Below the pieces are notes generated by a model, which saw nothing but the letters and a program-made list of their open reading frames with translations, was not told the origin of the DNA and did not search any database. A stretch of DNA of 63,282 nucleotides, filler included, from Cercozoa sp. M6MM (lineage: Eukaryota; Protista; Endomyxa: Ascetosporea): assembly GCA_040357565.1 (NCBI GenBank). It is 11 parts of 11 records of this genome, joined end to end, with 100 filler letters (N's around TTAATTAATTAA, not from the genome) between each part and the next. Parts side by side here need not be neighbours in the genome. Positions count along the whole stretch, not along the records: positions 1 to 23,153 come from JBDODJ010000174.1; 10 more parts are not named here. One strand, given 5' to 3'. Below, piece after piece: positions 923-21,353 of this stretch. Both the position numbers and the translations under genes were made by a program. Position 1 is the first letter of the stretch. Each line of letters opens with the position of its first letter.

Positions 923-2287
923 TCAGGCACTCGCAGTCTTTACAGCCTTTGGGAGAGACTGAGTGCTTAGAGCCCTTAGGTGGCGTGCTCGAGGAGACAA
1001 GCCACTGATGTTGGCGGCCTTTGTCTTGCACAGTTTGGCCGCCTCTTCCATTCCCGAAGCAAGCTCAAGGAACTCCTCCACGAGTTCCAGGCATCGTTCG
1101 TCAGATTGAAGTCTCCAAGCAGTCATCATTGACTCGTGCCACTCACGCTCAGTGATCAAAAGGTCCCCGTCTTGATCGAGCGAGCGAAACGATTGTGCAG
1201 CGGCGATAACGATGCTATCAAAATCGACATCTTCTTGCGCCGAAGGCGGCGTTGACAGCAACGGGTTTGCCGCCGAAGCACGATGAAAAAGCAAAGTGAG
1301 AGCTTCAATCGATACAATGTCAAGGTAGCCTACAAAAGAGAATATAAAGCTGCACTTTGATACAACATGTGCAATTACTTGAATCAAAAAGAGTGACCTC
1401 GATTGTTCCAGTCAGCAACCTCAAAGCATTTTTGCAGGCCCTCCTTTCGCTTACTGATGGAACTGCGCGACAACGTTGTTTTCCAGGTCGATCTTCTTCG
1501 AACTGAGCAAACATATGAACACGGGTAGCGAAATCTACGAGTGAACACATCAGATCTTTCATTTCAACGCACCTAAGCGCTCAACAAAGCTACGATGCCC
1601 GCGAACCTTGGCTTTCTTCTTTGTTTTGCCCCCAACGATGCTGTGCTTCTGCTGTTGTTGTCTCAACAAGCGGCATGCAACATCGCCGAGTGCGAGTGAG
1701 TCGGCTGTGATACAGGATGGGTTCGACTTTGCGTTGTTTTGTAACATCAAGGCAGCAGCTTTACGTAGTCGCTTTGTCTTGTTCTTTGCCTCTTCTTCTC
1801 TGTGCATCAAACAAGGGTATTCAGCGGATGCCTACTACAAATTATATTGTAGTGTCAACTCACCCAGAAACTATCGTGCTCGAGTGCCGCACAATCTTCT
1901 TTACAGAGGTTTCTTGGTCTTCGCTGACTTCGGTATCATTGTTATACTGTCGTGGCAGCATTGATGGCGACGGATTTCCTGTAACCTGCAGTTGAGGAGA
2001 ACTTGAGCTCGCGGATTGGCGTCCCTTGCCCGTGCGCTTCTTTCGCGATTTCAGCGGCCGAAACATTTCCTGGTCGCTGTTTAGCCGTGGTTCGGGAGCT
2101 ACTTGTTCTTTTCGGAGACTGCTGCCACTAAGAAACTCTTTCAGTCTCAAACGACTCAAAGCAGAAAACAAACGTCAGTTTCTTACACACCCGCAGCAGG
2201 AGGAGAACCGCGAAAAAATGAGCAGCGGGTCGTAGACGCAAGCAGCGTCTGGTCCTTAAAGCGGAGCAACCGTGTGACCAGCTCCAT
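923..2287 (-). CDS. Multi-exon hypothetical protein with one EF-hand-like motif
   Basis: Last exon has FRSLDQDGDLLITEREW (EF-hand loop pattern); upstream exons join through GT-AG introns; probable ATG at 2287. Confidence 0.55.
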
Positions 2288-2397
2288 CACGCGAAATCCA
2301 GGCAGCGTTTCCGCGCTGAACGAAGAAGTGTTATGGTCGGTTGATCACTGATCACTCGATCGAAAGACATGTGTGCTGTACTTTACTGCAGCTTACA

Positions 2398-3000
2398 ATG
2401 GAGCAACCAACCGTAGCGTACAAACTGTGCCCCGTTCAGGACTATGAGCTCGCCCTGCGAGAGGTTCGTTATGTTTTTGTTTTGTTTTTTGGTGTGTTAG
2501 TTTTGCGTCAACAAAAACAGTTGTACATCCTTAAACACTTTCTCACGATGCCATCATTAGGGCAAGTTGCTGCCTGCGCCGGTGGACGAGCGCGACAACT
2601 TCATGCATCTGTCGTGTGCCAAGACTGTATGTTTGTGCACACTCTGAAAATACTGTTGTGTGTTGGTTCAAATGACTTTGAGTCTGCTTAGGCTCGTCGC
2701 ACGTCAGAATTGTACTTTGCCAATGTGGAAGAGCTTGCAATCCTGACGGTTGATTTGGCAAAATTCTCCGAATTTGGCCGAGTTGAGTGGGAGCTCGCTC
2801 CCTCGCGCGGTACTCGTTTCTCTTCGAGAGATGCTTGTATCAATACGCCTGTGTATTTCGGAGCAGGCGTTAAGTTTCCGCACCTGTACTTCCCGGAAGA
2901 AGCCGAAAGTCTCGCTCTTGACATGCGATTCGTCACGCACTGCGACGTTGTGCGCAAGAACGACGATGGCGTGCACTCCATGCCTGACTACATTGAGTAG
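2398..3000 (+). CDS. DUF952 family protein (4 exons)
   Basis: Spliced: MEQPTVAYKLCPVQDYELALRE|GKLLPAPVDERDNFMHLSCAKT|ARRTSELYFANVEELAILTVDLAKFSEFGRVEWELAPSR|GVKFPHLY...; fits DUF952 motifs YK..., D..DGFIH.S, L.W.E....FPHLY. Confidence 0.85.
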
Positions 3001-3353
3001 ACTCGGCAGTCGGGCGGACCGCACTTGGTGAGCTTGGACAGCGATTACGAGAGTTGCCCTCCTCCCCTCTGCCTCCGTAATTAACTCTAGTTTCGACGCA
3101 ACCGCAAGTTATTCTTCACCAGACATCGTACTGTATCCTGTACCTGTCTGGGCTCATCCCTGGGCAGCGAGCCCAAACCTCCTCGCTTGAAGCAGACAAT
3201 CATACTGTACAGTATTTGCTCCGTGGGCGTGCCTAGAGGTGTGTGCCATAGATAGTGCAGCTCATTGCTTTGCAGAGCAACCACTGGGTCGTCCGTTGTT
3301 GCTGATCAGCATATTGGTTTTTTGCTCGTTCCGAGCGGAGCGCTGCGCGTGAC

Positions 3354-6300
3354 ATGGCGTCTCACACTGCCGCTGAACACGTAACATATCGATCGGTTTT
3401 AGCCTCACAGTGCATGTGTTGAGATAAAATTCGGACACAGGCTGTGTCGAAACGCTTGGCTGAGCGGTTGCTGGTGCTGCTCAATGTCGGCAAGGGACTC
3501 AACGTCCGTTTGTACCGAGTGCTTCAAAGCTCACTTCCTGCCGTGCTCGACGAAGGTGTTGACAAGGTAGTCATCGTTGTTAATCGAGCTGTTTTGAGTG
3601 TTTATACGCCCTTTTTTCAAGGTGGTCAAGCATCTGTCGAAACACATGGACGGCCGCGATGTTGAGAAAGTTGCGGGTTTTGAGGTATACTTTGAGTTGG
3701 AACCAATGTGGATCAGTTTGAGACGAGAGTTGTTACAGATTTTCACATCGAAAAGCAGCGATATCTGCGATGCTTTGGTACTTTCCAGTTCCAGTGAGTT
3801 ATTCCCGATCCAGCGAGCAAATGATGCGGCACGCGTAGTTTGAAACGTGGGACACGCTGTGTGCCGTCCTGGATTGGCGTCAGCACGCTCTCGACTTGCT
3901 GTGTACCTAGATATTCAAATAAGGTTTGTTGTGAGAGTATTTCTGTGTTAATCTTAGCCGATGTGAACTCCTGCACCGTGTGGCTTTCGATGGACGAAAA
4001 CGGCGAATTAACGTCGCGAACGCTCACGTTGCTCGCACAGGTGCTGTTTCGTCTTTGTTTCACCTTGTTTGTTTTGCTTTCAACTGTCTCATAACAGGTG
4101 GTTCGCGTCTATCTTCTGCTGGACCGAACGTTGTCACTGTCTGGTATATCCAGTTTGAAGCAGGTTTGCTATATTGGAATGGAGGATCTCCGTGCCCAGT
4201 CACAAGTGCCTCGTGCTACGCGCGTGCACATCGTCTCGTGCACGGCACTGACCCGGCCGAGTACTCTACTCTGTCCGAGTTTCTTACTGCCGTTGATGAC
4301 GGTACTTGAGACGCTTAACCTCTTGTCCTTTCACTTACTGGGGTGTGTACTCATCAGGAGTCGTGCCAAAATTGCAAGAAGACTGCGCTTCCTTTTCCGA
4401 TCGAATTGGCGAGGTAACTTTTCATGTTGCTTTCTATGTGTAGTCAAGTGTGTTTTGGCAGGTGCTCTGCAGTAGCACGGTGGGCGCCTTCTTTAATCAC
4501 GTCGTTGGTTACGGTGCCTTCGGCTGTTGAACTTTTTGTTTTGAAAGTTTTTATTTCTGTTTGGGCAGGTTCCGCACGATACTGCAACTTCGTTCGTCCC
4601 TTAGTACATTTAGCTGTATCCTTTTAGTGGGCTTTTTTGCATGCTGTTCCAGGTGTTGGCCAGGCACCCGCAAGTGGCGCAGTCGCTGCACCGTCCGCCG
4701 GGACATCAGCGACTCATGTTGCTCAACAAACTATGCTACTTGGACCAGATGCAGGAGTGGATTCTTTTTGGTACAGTTGCCTCTCGGCTAACAAGCCAGG
4801 GTATCTTGGATCAAGTTGCTTTCACTTGGTGCTTGTGTGCAGGCTTCCTGGCCTGTCCCAATGTGCTGACTGAACCGGATCCCAATGCCAAAAAGGTACT
4901 CGATTTAGGTTGACCTTTCTCTGTGTGTATTCAATGACATTTGCAGGGTTTCTTTGGTCGCTCAAGCGCACGCAACATCGATTCGACTCAAACTTTCGCT
5001 GCCAATGCTTCGATGTCGTCGCTGAGTGCTGATACGGTCAGTTCTCTTGCTTCTTTTATTGTCAGTAGTATTTGTGAAACTGTGTTCATATAGACAACGA
5101 TGCTCGAGTCGTCGATTCAGACCAGTCAAGCAGCCAATGCTGAAGATGATGGCATGCTCACAGAGGCACTTCCATTGGTGCGTTTGTTCTTCTGTGTGTC
5201 TTTTGTATTGACTGAACAGTGCTCAGGGCGTACGTGCGCGACGTGTGCTCGCTACGACACTCAGGTGCCGGTTATTCAGTTTGAAAGCTTGTGACTTATG
5301 CTAGCTGATGTGTGTAGCGACGTATGGAACCTTCGTTTGTTCCGCGAGGAGCATCTCAACGTACTTCAAGATTTTCGAAAGCATTTTGACAAAAACTGAA
5401 ACTCTTTTGCAGGTGCACCAGATCTACGGCAAGCTCTTTTCGTCGTTTCGAAAGGTAACCATTGCTTTCAGTCAATCTGATCGGAAAGCTCAAAAGTTAA
5501 ACGAAACACAACTCAGGGAAAGGCTCGACTGTCCAAATACAAGGACGAAGTGCTCAAACGTGCCGCTTTGGTGGCTGCCAACGACTCATGGTTTTTTTCG
5601 TTTTGTATATCTTTGGCGTTTCTTGTAATTACTGTTCTTTGACGTGTTTTGACTCAGGGAGAACCACAGTCGAATTCGCGCATGCTTGGTTCGTGTTTTG
5701 TCTGCTTACTCCTGTAACGTTACGCCTCTATACTTTTGGATACAGGCGGACAGTGTCGAGAGTGCACGCATGCTATGTGCCGACTGTCCGGGCGTCGCGG
5801 GTGCCTTTTTGCCTGTCATGCTTTCACTGGTAAGTCGACACGTGTTCTTTTAGTCAAAGTGATCGCGCACATGTTTACTGCAGGTGGCACTGAGTCGCCG
5901 CGAGTTGGACTGGATGTTCCGTCATTTGAACGAGTCGCCGCCACGAAAGCCGCGTCACAAATTTGACACTTCAGTTCGTTTTTTTTTTCAGTTGTTTCTT
6001 GTATTTTGGTATTTTGGTATTCTGGTATTCTCCCAGGTTGAAAGTGTGCTGAACCGCGCGGACGTGGACGACGTGGCAGTGCCGTCGTTCGTGACGAGTG
6101 CCGGTGAGAGCTTTGCGAAGCTGCTGCGCGCGACGTTGCTGCTGCAGGAGGTTCCGCGCGGACTCTGTCGCTCGGTGACCCGTCCCTACATGCGTTCCTT
6201 GGTGGGCAAAGTACTGCGCGATGAGGTACGAACACTTTGTCCATATGTACCTGTCCATATGTACCTGTCCATGCTGATCCAGGTGGAGAAACGCGTGGCG

Positions 6301-15280: not shown

Positions 15281-16915
15281 ATGGAGACGTTTAGCCCAAG
15301 GTAGCACACTGGTGCGCAAGATCTGTTGTGGAAGGGCCTCACCTCAATCCCTCAATAAAGCGTGAGTGTCGTGCGAGAGTTTGATGTGTGTCGCTGCTTT
15401 GGTGTTGACGGCGTTATTGTCGTCAGTGTGCGCGACGTCGACACAGGATGCTCGCGTGCGATCTGGAGGTACAATCCTGGCTATAAACTGGCGAAAAACT
15501 CGTAGCTACGTATCGGTTCTCCAGGAAACGTACTATCGCTTCGACACCAACCGTGGTTGCCGACAACTGATCCTTGGCGCGATTCAGTTCGCACTCAGAC
15601 CAGACAGCCGACTCAAGTCAACGGACGACCGTTGCTTCGAGTTAGTTCAGTTGTCACAGCATTGCCAACAACCTCGGCCTCGAATCCGATATCTCCTGAC
15701 TTTCGGCTCAACTCGAGACGACCACCGGTGCAGTTGCAGCGGCAGTTCCACCCCGAACAGCAACTCAGACTCGAGCATCGCCGACATTCTGTTGGCCACT
15801 CGCACCACCCTCACGCTATCCCCAGCTCTTCTTCACAGTCCAATTTCAGCGGCAGTCACGCGTTTCGACTGAGGTCTGCTGTTGACAGTTTTAGCCATCC
15901 AAACTCGAGTTCGATTCGAACTCGAACTATGCCGCTTGTGGAGCCGTTTTCGTCGTCGACCGGAGGCGAAATGCCCACCATCAGACGATGCGATGCAAGT
16001 CACCGCAGCGTCGTCGGGTGCGTGACACAGTGCGTTTCTCTCAAAGACGGCTTTTCGCGCGGATGTTGTGTTTTAACTTGAAACTGTGACTACTGCAGCA
16101 ATGCGTGGAACAACGATCCAGCAGCTGGAGACCGTATTTCGTGCCACATTTTGCCTCGAGACGCAACAGGGAAAGAAACAGAACCGCACCCAGATGATTT
16201 TGTCGTCGAGCTGTCAAATGTTCCTGAAGAGCTCAAGTACCCGAAGATCCAGAGGTGTATGTGTTCCGACTATTCTATTTTCGGAATGCAAATTTAGTTT
16301 GAGATGAAGCATTTGGACTTGGAGTTTTCGCGTAGCGAATGTGACGAACTTGCTCAATTTTGACGTGCCAATGTATCCGCTCGACGTCTCGTTGGGTCAG
16401 ATTGAAATCAATGTATACCTGACTTTCCCACCGGGTGGGCGGAGAAAGCAAATCAGAAAGTCGCCGATGACGGTGAAATTCGACCCGGCAGATTTTGATT
16501 GGTGAATCATACCTCAACCTCGTCTTCTTTCTCGTGTTGGTCGACTGCTGCTGTTATTCCTGCATTTTTCAGTTCGGTGTGCCTGGAGAGAATGACCTCT
16601 GAACCCTTTGTCATTCTTTCGCGGTGTGGACATCGATTCCATCGCCAATGTTTTGCTGGGTGTGTCAATCACAGCGAAGGCGCTGTCAAAAAGGTAGCAC
16701 ATGCTTGTCATCTGTGTCCTCACGATCTTTGGGCCAAAACCCTTTCACTGACACTTTAGTGCCCACTGTGCCGAACGAACATAGCGAGAAATGTTGTTTC
16801 GTTTGACAACCCTCGCATCAGCTACGACTACCGGCACACCAGAGTGTACAACCAAACAACTGTGCTAAGGGGTTTTGTGGCCAACCATTTTCGCTTGTGT
16901 CAGCAGCTCGATTAA
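15281..16915 (+). CDS. Protein with hydrophobic N-terminus, filamin-like Ig repeat and C-terminal RING-H2 finger
   Basis: RING-H2 spliced as C-SV-C-LERMTSEPFVILSR-C-G-H-RF-H-RQ-C...KK|C-PL-C; preceded by DASHRSVVG...AGDRISCHILPRDATGKE...IEINVYL...QIRKSPMTV (filamin-like); N-terminal LMCVAALVLTALLSSVCA. Confidence 0.7.
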
Positions 16916-17117: not shown

Positions 17118-20115
17118 ATGCCTCAACAGTCAGATCTGACATCAACTGGTGCCGTTTCACCTAACAGGTACCCGTGACCTGACCGTCAGTTTCAAAACCA
17201 CAAACGCTGGCTTTTCGTGGACAGAGATAGACGAAAGCGCGTCAACTACAGCCGATATACGGTACCGATTGAGAGTTCGCAAGCTTCGACACAGGTGGTG
17301 CAGCAAGAGATAAAACTTGCAGTCGAACGACGCAACAAAGTCGTTATTGCAGCTGTTGTGATCATACTGGCTTGTCTCTGTTTTGTGGTAAGCAACACCA
17401 ACTGAACAATCGTTGCACAGTAAATTTATTGTATGTGAGTATCAAGTACAGAGCACGTTGCTTGCGTTCATCGCGATTGCATCGAAAACGGAGAAGGAGG
17501 CACTGGATCGTGAAGTGAAGCATGCCGCCAGGATGGTGCAGTTTCGAATCGACCAAGCAGTCGACATCACCACAAACCTTGCGAGTGTACAATGAAACCA
17601 ATTGCCAAAATAACTCTCCGGCGGCATTCATTGTTGTACTTTGTTGTGCAGAATGTTGAAACGGATCAGCAGCTTGCGAAACTGCACTATGACAGTCAGG
17701 TCGCGATGTACACTCACATTGTTGACAACCTCAACACCATCGCAGTCGATGTATATCTCCAGTTCAAATACAAAAAAAAAATTCTAGTTGAAACACACTC
17801 ACAGTACTGGGGACAACCGACGAATGTGCCTGTCACTGACGATCTGAGGTACCGCTTACTGGTGTCACCTCCCACCGGACGCATTCGAGAGGACGAAGTG
17901 CTTCTCACGTTTGACGACGGGTATAGTCTCGCTCAGTTGCTTTATATAAATAGAAGCTGTGCTGTCGTTTCTATCAGCCCGTGGACACAAACTACAACGG
18001 ACGTATTGGACATTCTGAAAGCCAACAATGCCAAAGCAACCTTCTTTGTCACTGGCAGCAATGTGTATGTCTGACAAACATACTCCTCAACTTGAAATGG
18101 AATTTCTTTCCTTTAGAAACACGAATCCGTCGCAACTGCGTCGAATCGGTAAAGTGGTTGTCTGAGTATTCACACTGGCTTCAGTGCGCGGATGCTTGCA
18201 GTGTTAGAAGGACACGAAGTTGGTGTGCACACCTACACACACGCAGCAATGACGACACTCTCACGGGTGCAGCAGGACCAAGAGATCCAGCTGACACTCG
18301 ATGCTATCCACAATGCACTCGGTGTAAACCCAGTGACCAATCTGAGTGACTACAATGTGCGGTAAGTTGACCTGGGCAAACAAGCGTACTTCTTGTGCAC
18401 AGAGCAACTTTTCCGATACCGAAAAAATAGATATTGGAGACCACCCTACGGAGACACCAATGACACACTTCGACAGTACGTGTTAGACACTTACGGACTC
18501 GCAGAGGCCCTGTGGTCGATCGACACGAACGATTGGGACGCCAGTAACGATGCCAATTACATTGCTGCTGTGATTCAAAATGCACGCGGCCACAATATTC
18601 TCATGCACGACGCTGTCATCAACAGTGTTGAAACCGTCAAAGGTACAGTAAACTGTACTGCTCCTCTTGAGATTTCTTTCATTGTGCTTCCAACAGCTTT
18701 GAACACGACGTTGCCGACATTGGTGGCCCAAAACACGACCTTCCACACTCTGTCGCAGTTGGATGCACTGCGGAAACAAGAGGCCACAGCAGGCGGTTTC
18801 AGCTTGCCGTATTAGTGCGTTGCCTTTACTCAAGCTTTCATTTGTTGAGGACCTCAATTTGTGCTTTTTGAACAGCAAGAAATACTCAGTGCGAAGCGAC
18901 ACGATGAAGCGAGCCTACGTACCAGGCATGACGTACGCTCTGTCGTGTGGCTACATTCCAACCTCTGAGGCGGCACAGTGGAGTGCAACGACAGGCGCTT
19001 GGATTTGGCCAGCGTCCACTTCACCGACTTACAAGTACATGCCGATCAACGAGGCAGTGGCCATCGTGTCACCTCGCTCGCTTTCCTCACTCGGTAAATT
19101 TAACTTCAATTTCCCAGTTGAGCCGAAACTGTTTTGATTTCTTTTCTTAATACCAGTGTGTTTTTATAACGACTTTAGCTTCAACGGTGGACGATACTGA
19201 AGTGTTGAACGTGAGTTCGGTGCTGCGCGGACACGATGTTGCCTCGGACGGCGATATTTCGAGAGTGTTCGACGAAAGCTCAAGTGTATGTTTACAATGA
19301 GCTGCAGGATAGTATGTTGTATCTGTCTTTCTGAGGTCTAAAACTGCGCAGAAAGTCGTGTATGCACAAGGTGTCGCACTGCCGTTTGCCCAGACACCGT
19401 GGCCGACTTCCGAACAGACCGAAATGCGAGGTGCACTCGTTGCACCCGTTGTGATCAACGATAATGTCGAAGGTAACCGACGTGCATTAAAACTTAAATT
19501 TAAATAAACCTATCTGGCCGAAGTACTGTTCTTGTGTTCCTCAGGCACAGTTGTGACTGGTCTCGACATGTTGCTACTGTTACAGTCAGTCGGAAATACC
19601 ACCGACCTGCAAGTAAGCGCAACAAACGAACTCTGCGACGAAGGCGGTCTTCGAATGAGTTTCGACAAATGTCACACTTCCACACTACAACTACCTGGCA
19701 TTGAGGTACGAAACTAGCGAGAGTACACTCAGCTGCGGTACCCTCTCTCTCACGTATGCGTTTGTACAGCTGCAAGTCACGTGGCGACGTCACATCACTG
19801 TTTCCCCCGTTCGAACTGGTATTGATAACTCAGCTATTAGAGTAAGCTACATAATACAGTCTCGCACTGCTGCTTTCAGTCTTACCAGCCGTGCTCCTGA
19901 CGACGTTTTTTGTGGCATCTCTTCTATCTCTCTCTGCACTCTCGTTGCGGCAGCAGAAGCAGCAGCAGCGATATTATGTCTCAAGCAACCAGCACATCAA
20001 GCTTGTCGTGCCCAAAGACCGTGACAGCAGTGAAGCACGCACGGACAGTCAAGTGGCAGTGAGTCCGAGAAAACAAATCATCAAAAGCGATGTCAGTGCT
20101 ATCGACGCTGTATGA
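17118..20115 (+). CDS. Two-TM membrane protein: CE4/NodB polysaccharide (chitin/peptidoglycan) deacetylase within a CHASE-like extracellular domain
   Basis: All five CE4 motifs present (TFDDG|P, HTYTH, RPPYG, DTNDW, LMHD; ~17890-18770); TM1 VVIAAVVIILACLCFV|STLLAFIAIA; downstream exons CHASE-like; TM2 VLPAVLLTTFFVASLLSLSALSL. CE4 call is strong, CHASE call moderate. Confidence 0.8.
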
Positions 20116-20250: not shown

Positions 20251-21353
20251 TCACGCGAACAGCTTGACAAACACGGAGTCGTCGAAGGCGTCGACGGTAG
20301 CATCGAAGGATTCGTCGCCGCCTTGGGCAAGAGCGCCGAGTTTTGCAAGGATCTGACCGCCGGCGATCTTGCCGATTAGGAAGTCAAAGTGCTGCGTGGC
20401 GTAGTTTATTGGCGCGTCCACAGGTGTGGCTAAGTATACATACACATTTTTCTCTTTGGTCACCTGTATCGGAGCGCACTATCAGTATCGAAAATAGCTT
20501 CACGAAACACACCACCAGACGACTGCAGCAACACGAACTTCTTGTCACCGAGCAGACCATGTGGACCGTCTTCTCGGTACTCAAAGGCCACACCTGCCGT
20601 CAGTGCCAGGTCGTACCACAGCTTGAGTGATGCACTGCAGCAACAAACACACTAATCTTGCCCTTTGTGCATCAGGCACGCAATTGTATGAAGTGAGCAA
20701 AGCGTACGGAACGAAGAAGTTATGCACCGGCGACTCAATCACAACGACATCGGCCGCCTTGATCTCGTTCGACAACTCGCTCGACACTGGCATGGCACCA
20801 GCGAATGCGCTATATTTTGAGCGGGTTTTGCGAAGATAGCTAAAATCAACAGACCAAAATCAAAAGTACAAGCCCTTCTCGGCGAATTCTTGGTTCAGGT
20901 GAGGCAGAGGACTCGCAGCCACTGCGACACCAACAACGATATCGCAACCTAAAATAGCAGTGGCTGAAAATGCAATCGGTACGGTCTCGAACGACAGTGA
21001 CGACCTTGACGTTGTGAGTGGCAGCCTTCTTCTCGAGTCGCTCAAAGAAGGCGTTGCCTAACTTGCGCGACAGTGAGCCGTGCCCCTGGTAAGCACGAAG
21101 AGAACATCGTCATCATTGGATCCGTACCGGATATAAAATATATATTGTACGGAAGGGGTACCTCATCACGCGGCGATGTTCGCACGCGGAGCACGTTGAG
21201 GACCCGACGCGCTGGTCCGACAGCCCGCGTATCACGAACTGTGGAGCGAGCGGCTGTTTGAGTACGACCTTGTTGTGGAACTTGTTTTCGTGGTGTGCTT
21301 GAACGCGATTGGTGCGACTCGCTCGCGGCGGCAGTAGAGGATACGCAACCCAT
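20251..21353 (-). CDS. azoR: FMN-dependent NADH-azoreductase (AzoR/AcpD, flavodoxin_2 fold) with N-terminal extension
   Basis: VLRVRTSPRDE|GHGSLSRKLG...VVRD|LAASPLPHLNQE...EIKAADVVVIESPVHNFFVP|ASLKLWYDLALTAGVAFEYREDGPHGLLGDKKFVLLQSSGG. Confidence 0.88.

Follow-up and report, generated by a model that had tools for sequence, protein, structure and literature searches.

A probable single gene for a doubly membrane-anchored CE4 deacetylase with an orphan, predicted extracytoplasmic region in the amoeba Cercozoa sp. M6MM

Results

The gene and its setting

The gene described here lies on the forward strand of a 63,282-nucleotide stretch of DNA (the window) from the amoeba Cercozoa sp. M6MM. The window consists of 11 parts of assembly GCA_040357565.1 joined by filler; positions are counted along its whole length, and the part concerned here, from JBDODJ010000174.1, makes up its first 23,153 positions. 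The gene encodes a polysaccharide deacetylase domain of the CE4 family with a hydrophobic helix on either side, and between the enzyme and the second helix there is an orphan stretch of about 220 amino acids, here called region Y. We put the probability at roughly two-thirds that this is one gene for a doubly anchored CE4 deacetylase acting on the outer side of the membrane (an ecto-enzyme), with region Y as a lineage-specific juxtamembrane part.

The source organism is now named Lemnamoeba sinaloensis (PMC13746701). It is an amphizoic amoeba of the Apofilosa (Rhizaria) from fish gills, and its genome was annotated with funannotate, using transcript reads (PMC11069148). The genome is very compact, genes taking up 84% of it and intergenic DNA 6% (PMC13746701). 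The assembly searched in this work has 23.6 Mb in 2235 contigs.

Gene structure and splicing

The gene model was built by hand from the three forward reading frames. It runs from an ATG at 17118 to a stop codon at 20113-20115 and comprises 15 exons with 2112 coding bases, giving a protein of 703 amino acids without an internal stop (Table 1). All 14 introns are of the GT-AG type, mostly GTA...YAG, and are 52-85 nt long; their GC content is 41%, compared with 51% for the exons. The encoded protein begins with a transmembrane (TM) helix, TM1, which is followed by a linker of about 110 amino acids, a complete CE4/NodB domain, region Y, a second helix (TM2) and a tail of 55 amino acids. A preliminary description of the locus had proposed one splice-consistent gene with these limits, and the open 15-exon model bears that out; the peptides cited in that description are found in exons 3, 10, 11, 12 and 13. 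It had laid stress on a 67-nt GT-AG intron joining the halves in frame, which is indeed present both in our model (intron 9) and in an NCBI model, but the gene has 14 introns in all, and possibly one more of 54 nt.

Table 1. Features of the CE4 gene, given in positions of the window
Feature	Position	Strand	Remarks
Whole gene	17118..20115	+	15 exons, 703 aa, hand-built model
Exons 1-8	17118-17167, 17225-17387, 17452-17586, 17652-17920, 17978-18064, 18117-18148, 18202-18361, 18431-18642	+	
Exons 9-15	18697-18808, 18876-19093, 19179-19285, 19352-19472, 19545-19705, 19770-19818, 19880-20115	+	
TM1, signal-anchor	17340-17387 + 17452-17484	+	27 hydrophobic residues, split by intron 2 (17388-17451)
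Linker X	17485..17885	+	~110 aa, TM1 to CE4; contains intron 3 (17587-17651)
Further in-frame intron	17751..17804	+	54 nt, GT-AG, stop-free, holds A10 run; spliced out in P0004
CE4/NodB polysaccharide deacetylase domain	17886..18782	+	Exons 4-9; PF01522 and solved structures
CE4 motifs	TFDD(G) 17907-17918, HTYTH 18228-18242, RPPYG 18438-18452, DTNDW 18522-18536, LMHD 18600-18611	+	
Intron 6	18149..18201	+	53 nt; read through in NCBI annotation, gene split there
Intron 9	18809..18875	+	67 nt, GTATTA...GAACAG; joins exons 9 and 10 in frame
Region Y	18876..19818	+	~220 aa, exons 10-14, orphan, between CE4 and TM2
61-nt intron before exon 15	19819-19879	+	Sole route to TM2 in model
TM2	19882..19947	+	22 hydrophobic residues, Kyte-Doolittle max 2.24; RQQKQQQR next
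Cytoplasmic tail (predicted)	19948..20115	+	55 aa and stop codon; no domain

Intron 9 is like the other 13 introns in its length and at its ends. When it is retained, the reading frame meets a TAG at 18813-18815 (open reading frame 18393..18815), where the preliminary description had placed a stop. The additional 54-nt intron falls within the linker, and splicing it out gives 16 exons and a protein of 685 amino acids in which the linker is shorter by 18 residues; the forms with and without this segment could be alternative versions of the linker. At the 3' end, a join from a GTAAGC donor at 19842 to the acceptor at 19879 was rejected in favour of the 61-nt intron in Table 1, as it would remove only 38 nt, less than any other intron, and leads immediately to a stop codon.

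Region Y looks to be coding. The codon-position bias of exons 1-9 is also found in exons 10-15, for which the model frame scores +10 bits against -78 and -73 for the others. Exons 11, 12, 13 and 15 each favour the model frame separately, exon 15 with +4.8 bits against -21 and -20.

Public annotation

NCBI holds two partial models at the locus, within 17452-19714. The first, P0004 (MHM6MM_004158), has 134 amino acids, starts from a Met within exon 3 and ends in ...RRIGKVVV, the read-through of intron 6; it joins ...TIAVD to YWGQ... across the optional intron in the linker. The second, P0001 (MES1911783.1, 'MAG: hypothetical protein MHM6MM_004159 [Cercozoa sp. M6MM]'), has 351 amino acids, starts from a Met within exon 7, reads ...GGFSLPKKYSV... 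over intron 9 and ends in a read-through of intron 13. A search with the peptide of exon 10 found this model as the one identical public protein.

Exons 5, 6 and 8-13 are letter-identical between our model and the two NCBI models, as are nine of the junctions, that of intron 9 among them. Neither NCBI model contains exons 1-2, with the start and TM1, the His-His motif of exon 7, or exons 14-15, with TM2 and the tail. The division at intron 6 is an error, because it cuts the CE4 domain in two and leaves the His-His motif in neither product. The odd ends of P0004 and P0001 make them look as if they had been built from incompletely spliced transcript pieces.

The CE4 domain

Database searches were made with the exons singly, and P0004 and P0001 stood for exons 3-6 and 7-13, respectively; exons 1-2 and 14-15 were searched as single exons only. 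Pfam family PF01522, with a curated cut-off of 23.1 bits, scores 70.3 bits on genomic positions 17886-18335 read through the introns, 59.7 on P0004, and 27.8 and 36 on single exons. Solved CE4 enzymes match both halves of the domain, the best being the acetylxylan esterase SlCE4 of Streptomyces lividans (2cc0) with an E-value of 1.7e-13. Further matches are to PdaC, PgdA, 5jp6 and several peptidoglycan and chitin deacetylases, including the fungal structures ClCDA (2iw0) and AnCDA (2y8u), and ArCE4A matches over the His-His exon.

A CE4 enzyme is recognised by five motifs, TFDDG, H(S/T)xxH, RxPY, DxxDW and LxH, which hold the residues of the Asp-His-His metal triad as well as the Asp and His of catalysis. 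All five are intact here, as TFDDG, HTYTH, RPPYG, DTNDW and LMHD in exons 4/5, 7 and 8, and align with those of solved enzymes, in agreement with the complete catalytic domain of the preliminary description. The domain is probably catalytically intact and metal-dependent, and is predicted to be active. By alignment with PdaC the fold ends about 8 residues before the end of exon 9.

The nearest relatives outside this genome are all bacterial. They are the Paenibacillus CE4-CBM6 proteins and proteins of Actinomycetota and Chloroflexota, with about 34-43% identity over the CE4 part only. An old bacterial transfer, with later intron gain and duplication, is a possible origin for the CE4 genes of the amoeba.

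Membrane anchors and flanking genes

On the Kyte-Doolittle scale there are exactly two strongly hydrophobic stretches in the protein, which confirms the two TM helices noted at the outset. TM1 reaches 3.41 over 15 residues of exon 2, extends into exon 3 by a further 11 residues and has a basic stretch on its N-terminal side. Six N-x-S/T sequons lie between TM1 and TM2. The natural topology would be one with both ends inside and the whole middle part outside. The linker (exons 3 and 4) matches no Pfam family and gains no score with the CHASE profile described below.

No output domain (kinase, cyclase or the like) follows TM2; there is only the 55-residue tail before the stop, and the next gene is on the opposite strand. 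This part of the preliminary description stands. The upstream neighbour is a RING-type zinc-finger exon at 16499-16759 (+; zf-RING_11, E 1.3e-6), and the downstream one a weakly flavodoxin-like/FMN-reductase exon at 20584-20793 (-), convergent with the CE4 gene. These neighbours bound the gene on both sides, and nothing beyond TM2 could serve as an output domain.

The region between the CE4 domain and TM2

With an E-value limit of 10, no Pfam family matches region Y, whether its exons are searched one by one or in P0001. A phmmer search of 1.84 billion cluster representatives with exon 10 returned, besides two repeat artefacts, only the model of the gene itself, and a word-indexed search of 5.8 billion proteins with residues 137-351 of P0001 returned only the query protein itself. 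A scan of metagenome contigs found no relatives, and a first look through the amoeba's own genome no second copy. ESM Atlas gave nothing usable for P0001, the Atlas model having a pLDDT of 0.46. AlphaFold2 run without an alignment gave low-confidence models, with a pLDDT of 33.0 for P0001 and 34.2 for the corresponding region of a paralogue on contig C6, described below; the latter model is mostly of beta strands.

The preliminary description had seen in this protein a CHASE sensor domain with the CE4 domain inserted into it. Of the two Pfam families it named, PF01522 matches, as given above, and CHASE (PF03924, cut-off 25 bits) does not: with E-values of up to 10 allowed, nothing came up in the whole genome, in the single exons or in P0001, in which exons 7-13 are joined. 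A CHASE profile of our own was made from 20 CHASE domains of Chloroflexota genomes aligned with their TM flanks. Run with all HMMER filters off (hmmsearch --max), it had no match on P0001 with the E-value limit raised to 1000. No exon scored above 1.3 bits, nor did P0004, and the highest scores were simply those of the TM exons. As a control, the profile was rebuilt without its most divergent member, and it recovered that member at 28 bits.

The best local match by hhalign set 'GHDVASD' against the CHASE motif 'G.Dlas' over 7 columns, with a score of 15.3 compared with 13.5 +/- 2.0 for shuffled sequences; 15 of 100 shuffles reached that score, and the global z-score was -0.63. The CHASE-like string of motifs is thus at chance level, its score lying within the range of the shuffles. 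Region Y does share with CHASE domains a predicted extracytoplasmic position between two TM helices, a generic trait that does not discriminate. The CHASE fold itself has a long N-terminal helix and two PAS-like subdomains, for which the AlphaFold2 and Atlas models are too low in confidence. The inserted CHASE domain is not supported by these comparisons. The surface enzyme-sensor hybrid built upon it keeps its CE4 enzyme, probably facing outwards, and its two TM helices, and finds no support for its CHASE sensor flanks.

Paralogues in the same genome

Further CE4 genes were found on at least six other contigs. Those on C64 (L070) and C32 (L072) both begin with a signal peptide and the CE4 domain; in the former a short stretch, a hydrophobic C-terminus that may act as an anchor, and a stop follow, and in the latter a Ser/Thr stalk and a hydrophobic end resembling that of a glycosylphosphatidylinositol (GPI)-anchored protein. 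The C106 paralogue (L071) has an N-terminal hydrophobic segment, the CE4 domain, a Thr/Pro stretch and a possible TM helix, and that on C1134 (L073) a signal peptide, the CE4 domain and an acidic stretch behind it. The C249 gene (L075) is on the other strand. The signal peptides, stalks and C-terminal anchors point to a family of surface-tethered CE4 enzymes.

The paralogue on C6 (L074, G000:C6:20000-28000, about 1780-4300, +) is closest to the present gene in its plan, with an N-terminal TM helix, about 100 amino acids, the CE4 domain, about 250 amino acids, a TM helix and a short tail. The end of its CE4 domain runs on for 85 amino acids in the same open frame, and a 200-residue open frame beyond can be reached through a 65-nt GT-AG intron. 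The continuation in one frame indicates that a CE4 domain with a further region downstream is a family trait, and this gene is the best independent support for reading CE4, further region and TM helix as one protein. Its post-CE4 region has no match in Pfam or among solved structures, and ESM Atlas gave only weak C2/beta-sandwich leads for it (0.85, all below 0.9). At the matching place it is weakly like region Y, TSEAAQWSATTGAWIWP aligning with TSDSLRWSNSNGDWMLP at a BLASTP E-value of 0.005; the Smith-Waterman score of the two regions is 53 compared with 33 +/- 5 for shuffles, 4 of 1000 of which reached it. With our CHASE profile this region scores negatively, and CHASE-like strings seen in it by eye were rejected for that reason.

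Long TG/CA dinucleotide repeats lie in or beside two of the paralogues, at about 2740-2800 in L074 and about 4690-4800 in L070, and one of the two contains four codons that are masked or unread and appear as X when translated. Such repeats agree with the unusually high simple-sequence repeat load of this genome (PMC13746701).

A possible substrate in the same organism

Exons of the GT2 type that match Chitin_synth_2 (PF03142) occur on C11 (L076, G000:C11:160692-163841), with QRRRW, on C10 (L077, G000:C10:5879-9031), with EDRLL and QRKRW, and on C742 (L078); a motif of the (A)EDRxL type is found among them. They suggest that the amoeba may be able to make chitin or a related polymer.

Discussion

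In the reading we prefer, the gene would give a two-pass membrane protein of about 685-703 amino acids with both termini in the cytoplasm. The middle part, ie linker, CE4 domain and region Y, would face outwards at the cell surface or inwards into a secretory or phagosomal compartment, and there the enzyme would most likely strip acetyl groups from a polymer of N-acetylglucosamine (GlcNAc) at the membrane. The likeliest substrate would be the amoeba's own chitin, converted to chitosan; chito-oligomers, peptidoglycan, or the acetylated xylan of prey are alternatives. Region Y and TM2 may form a second tether or spacer, or perhaps a substrate-binding module, and would take the place that Ser/Thr-rich stalks and C-terminal anchors have in the sister paralogues. 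The gene structure, the CE4 domain with its motifs, the two hydrophobic helices and the lack of any output domain can be read directly in the locus; the topology, the substrate and the role of region Y are inferred.

The enzyme itself is ordinary, since bacteria and fungi are well known to tether CE4 deacetylases to their membranes. The bacterial proteins PgdA (SpPgdA, 2c1g) and PdaC of Bacillus subtilis (6h8n) have, like the present protein, an N-terminal TM helix, a non-catalytic region and then, outside the cytoplasm, a CE4 domain that bears these five motifs. Their sequences match the present protein directly, with E-values of 2e-8 for its N-terminal half and between 6e-7 and 1e-8 for its C-terminal half. 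However, they have a single TM helix and carry their extra domains before the CE4 domain, whereas the present protein has its orphan region and a second helix behind it, and its gene, unlike theirs, contains spliceosomal introns. SlCE4, the best-scoring solved structure, and the Paenibacillus CE4-CBM6 'xylanase deacetylases', the best homologues from outside the genome, do have a module after the CE4 domain; yet these enzymes are soluble secreted proteins and their module can be recognised as CBM6. No similarity to them reaches past the CE4 domain.

In fungi the GPI-anchored chitin deacetylases, such as Cda1-3 of Cryptococcus, are CE4 ecto-enzymes of the plasma membrane that convert nascent chitin to chitosan. 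The C32 and C64 paralogues look like enzymes of this type. The present protein differs in being anchored by two TM helices instead of by a signal peptide plus GPI, and in having an orphan domain in place of the Ser/Thr stalk of the fungal enzymes. The CHASE receptors (plant AHK4/CRE1 and bacterial kinases and cyclases, PF03924) also have an extracellular stretch of similar length between two TM helices, but the present protein has no detectable sequence or profile similarity to them, no kinase or cyclase output, and an enzyme within the loop.

Several observations count against the preferred reading. As a single gene it rests on prediction, on the NCBI partial models and on the C6 paralogue. 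The CE4 domain stops just short of intron 9 and a stop codon comes 5 nt into that intron; exon 10 taken alone has no clear codon bias; and the donor of the join to TM2 (GTATTG) is weaker than the nearby GTAAGC at 19842. As to the substrate, PF03142 also matches other GT2 synthases in control genomes, and the nearest characterised CE4 relatives include acetylxylan esterases beside chitin and peptidoglycan deacetylases. The features around intron 9 would suit a locus with two products, ie a type-II anchored CE4 protein ending at 18815, from a gene of its own or through retention of intron 9, and the product of a downstream gene read from an ATG at 18892-18894 (MKRAY...) through TM2. Exon 9 completes the CE4 fold, the TAG stands directly after that exon and the ATG shortly past the acceptor; the NCBI pipeline has already fragmented the locus, and in a genome with just 6% intergenic DNA (PMC13746701) two adjacent genes are possible. 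We nevertheless regard two products as unlikely. P0001 splices 18809-18875, an intron that resembles the other 13 in length and ends, and the downstream protein would be without a signal peptide despite its sequons, its C-terminal TM helix and its 55-residue tail. The C6 paralogue, moreover, shares the overall order of the present protein, and its open frame runs on unbroken past the end of the CE4 domain.

Region Y could also be more than a spacer. It might be a module peculiar to the lineage, of carbohydrate-binding or beta-sandwich type, that keeps the substrate in place for the CE4 domain; this would refine the doubly anchored ecto-deacetylase and is not exclusive of it. CBM6 or ricin-type modules follow the CE4 domain in many bacterial relatives, and both the weak C2-like leads for the C6 region and the beta strands of the low-confidence model would fit; however, no family match whatever was obtained, and at a pLDDT of 33-34 the strands carry little meaning, so that such a module is at present a rather improbable assignment. 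A sensor is more doubtful again. If the flanks of the CE4 domain were a very divergent CHASE or other PAS/Cache-like domain, the enzyme could be ligand-gated or signal via a partner, and the place between two TM helices, the length of region Y (about 220 amino acids compared with 189 Pfam CHASE positions), the helical stretch after TM1 and the fall of the best hhalign local match on the conserved G-x-D-l-a-s motif of CHASE are all consistent with it. Yet neither CHASE nor Cache families of Pfam match, the unfiltered profile stays at or below 1.3 bits where the control reached 28, the local and global hhalign scores both lie inside the shuffle range, the C6 region is negative with the same profile and there is no output domain. 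ESM Atlas, too, offers no usable match for P0001 and for the paralogue only the beta-sandwich leads (0.85), and we consider a sensor very improbable. About as little weight is given to the more specific conjecture that region Y, perhaps with the helix after TM1, is a divergent PAS/Cache/CHASE-like module which gates the CE4 domain or reports on substrate to a membrane partner, eg a chitin synthase; if true, the protein would be a eukaryotic enzyme-sensor hybrid without an output domain of its own.

The practical gain for the doubly anchored deacetylase is a corrected gene model, since the public one cuts the catalytic domain and loses both anchors together with the His-His motif. What is new is that intron-bearing CE4 genes form a small family in a rhizarian amoeba, and that the products of two of them, the present gene and that on C6, have a TM helix at each end. 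These two carry a region of about 220-250 amino acids, weakly alike between them, that has no relatives in any collection searched. To our knowledge there are almost no functional data for the Apofilosa, and if the amoeba makes chitin, the CE4 family would offer a first way into the study of how chitosan is formed in this group.

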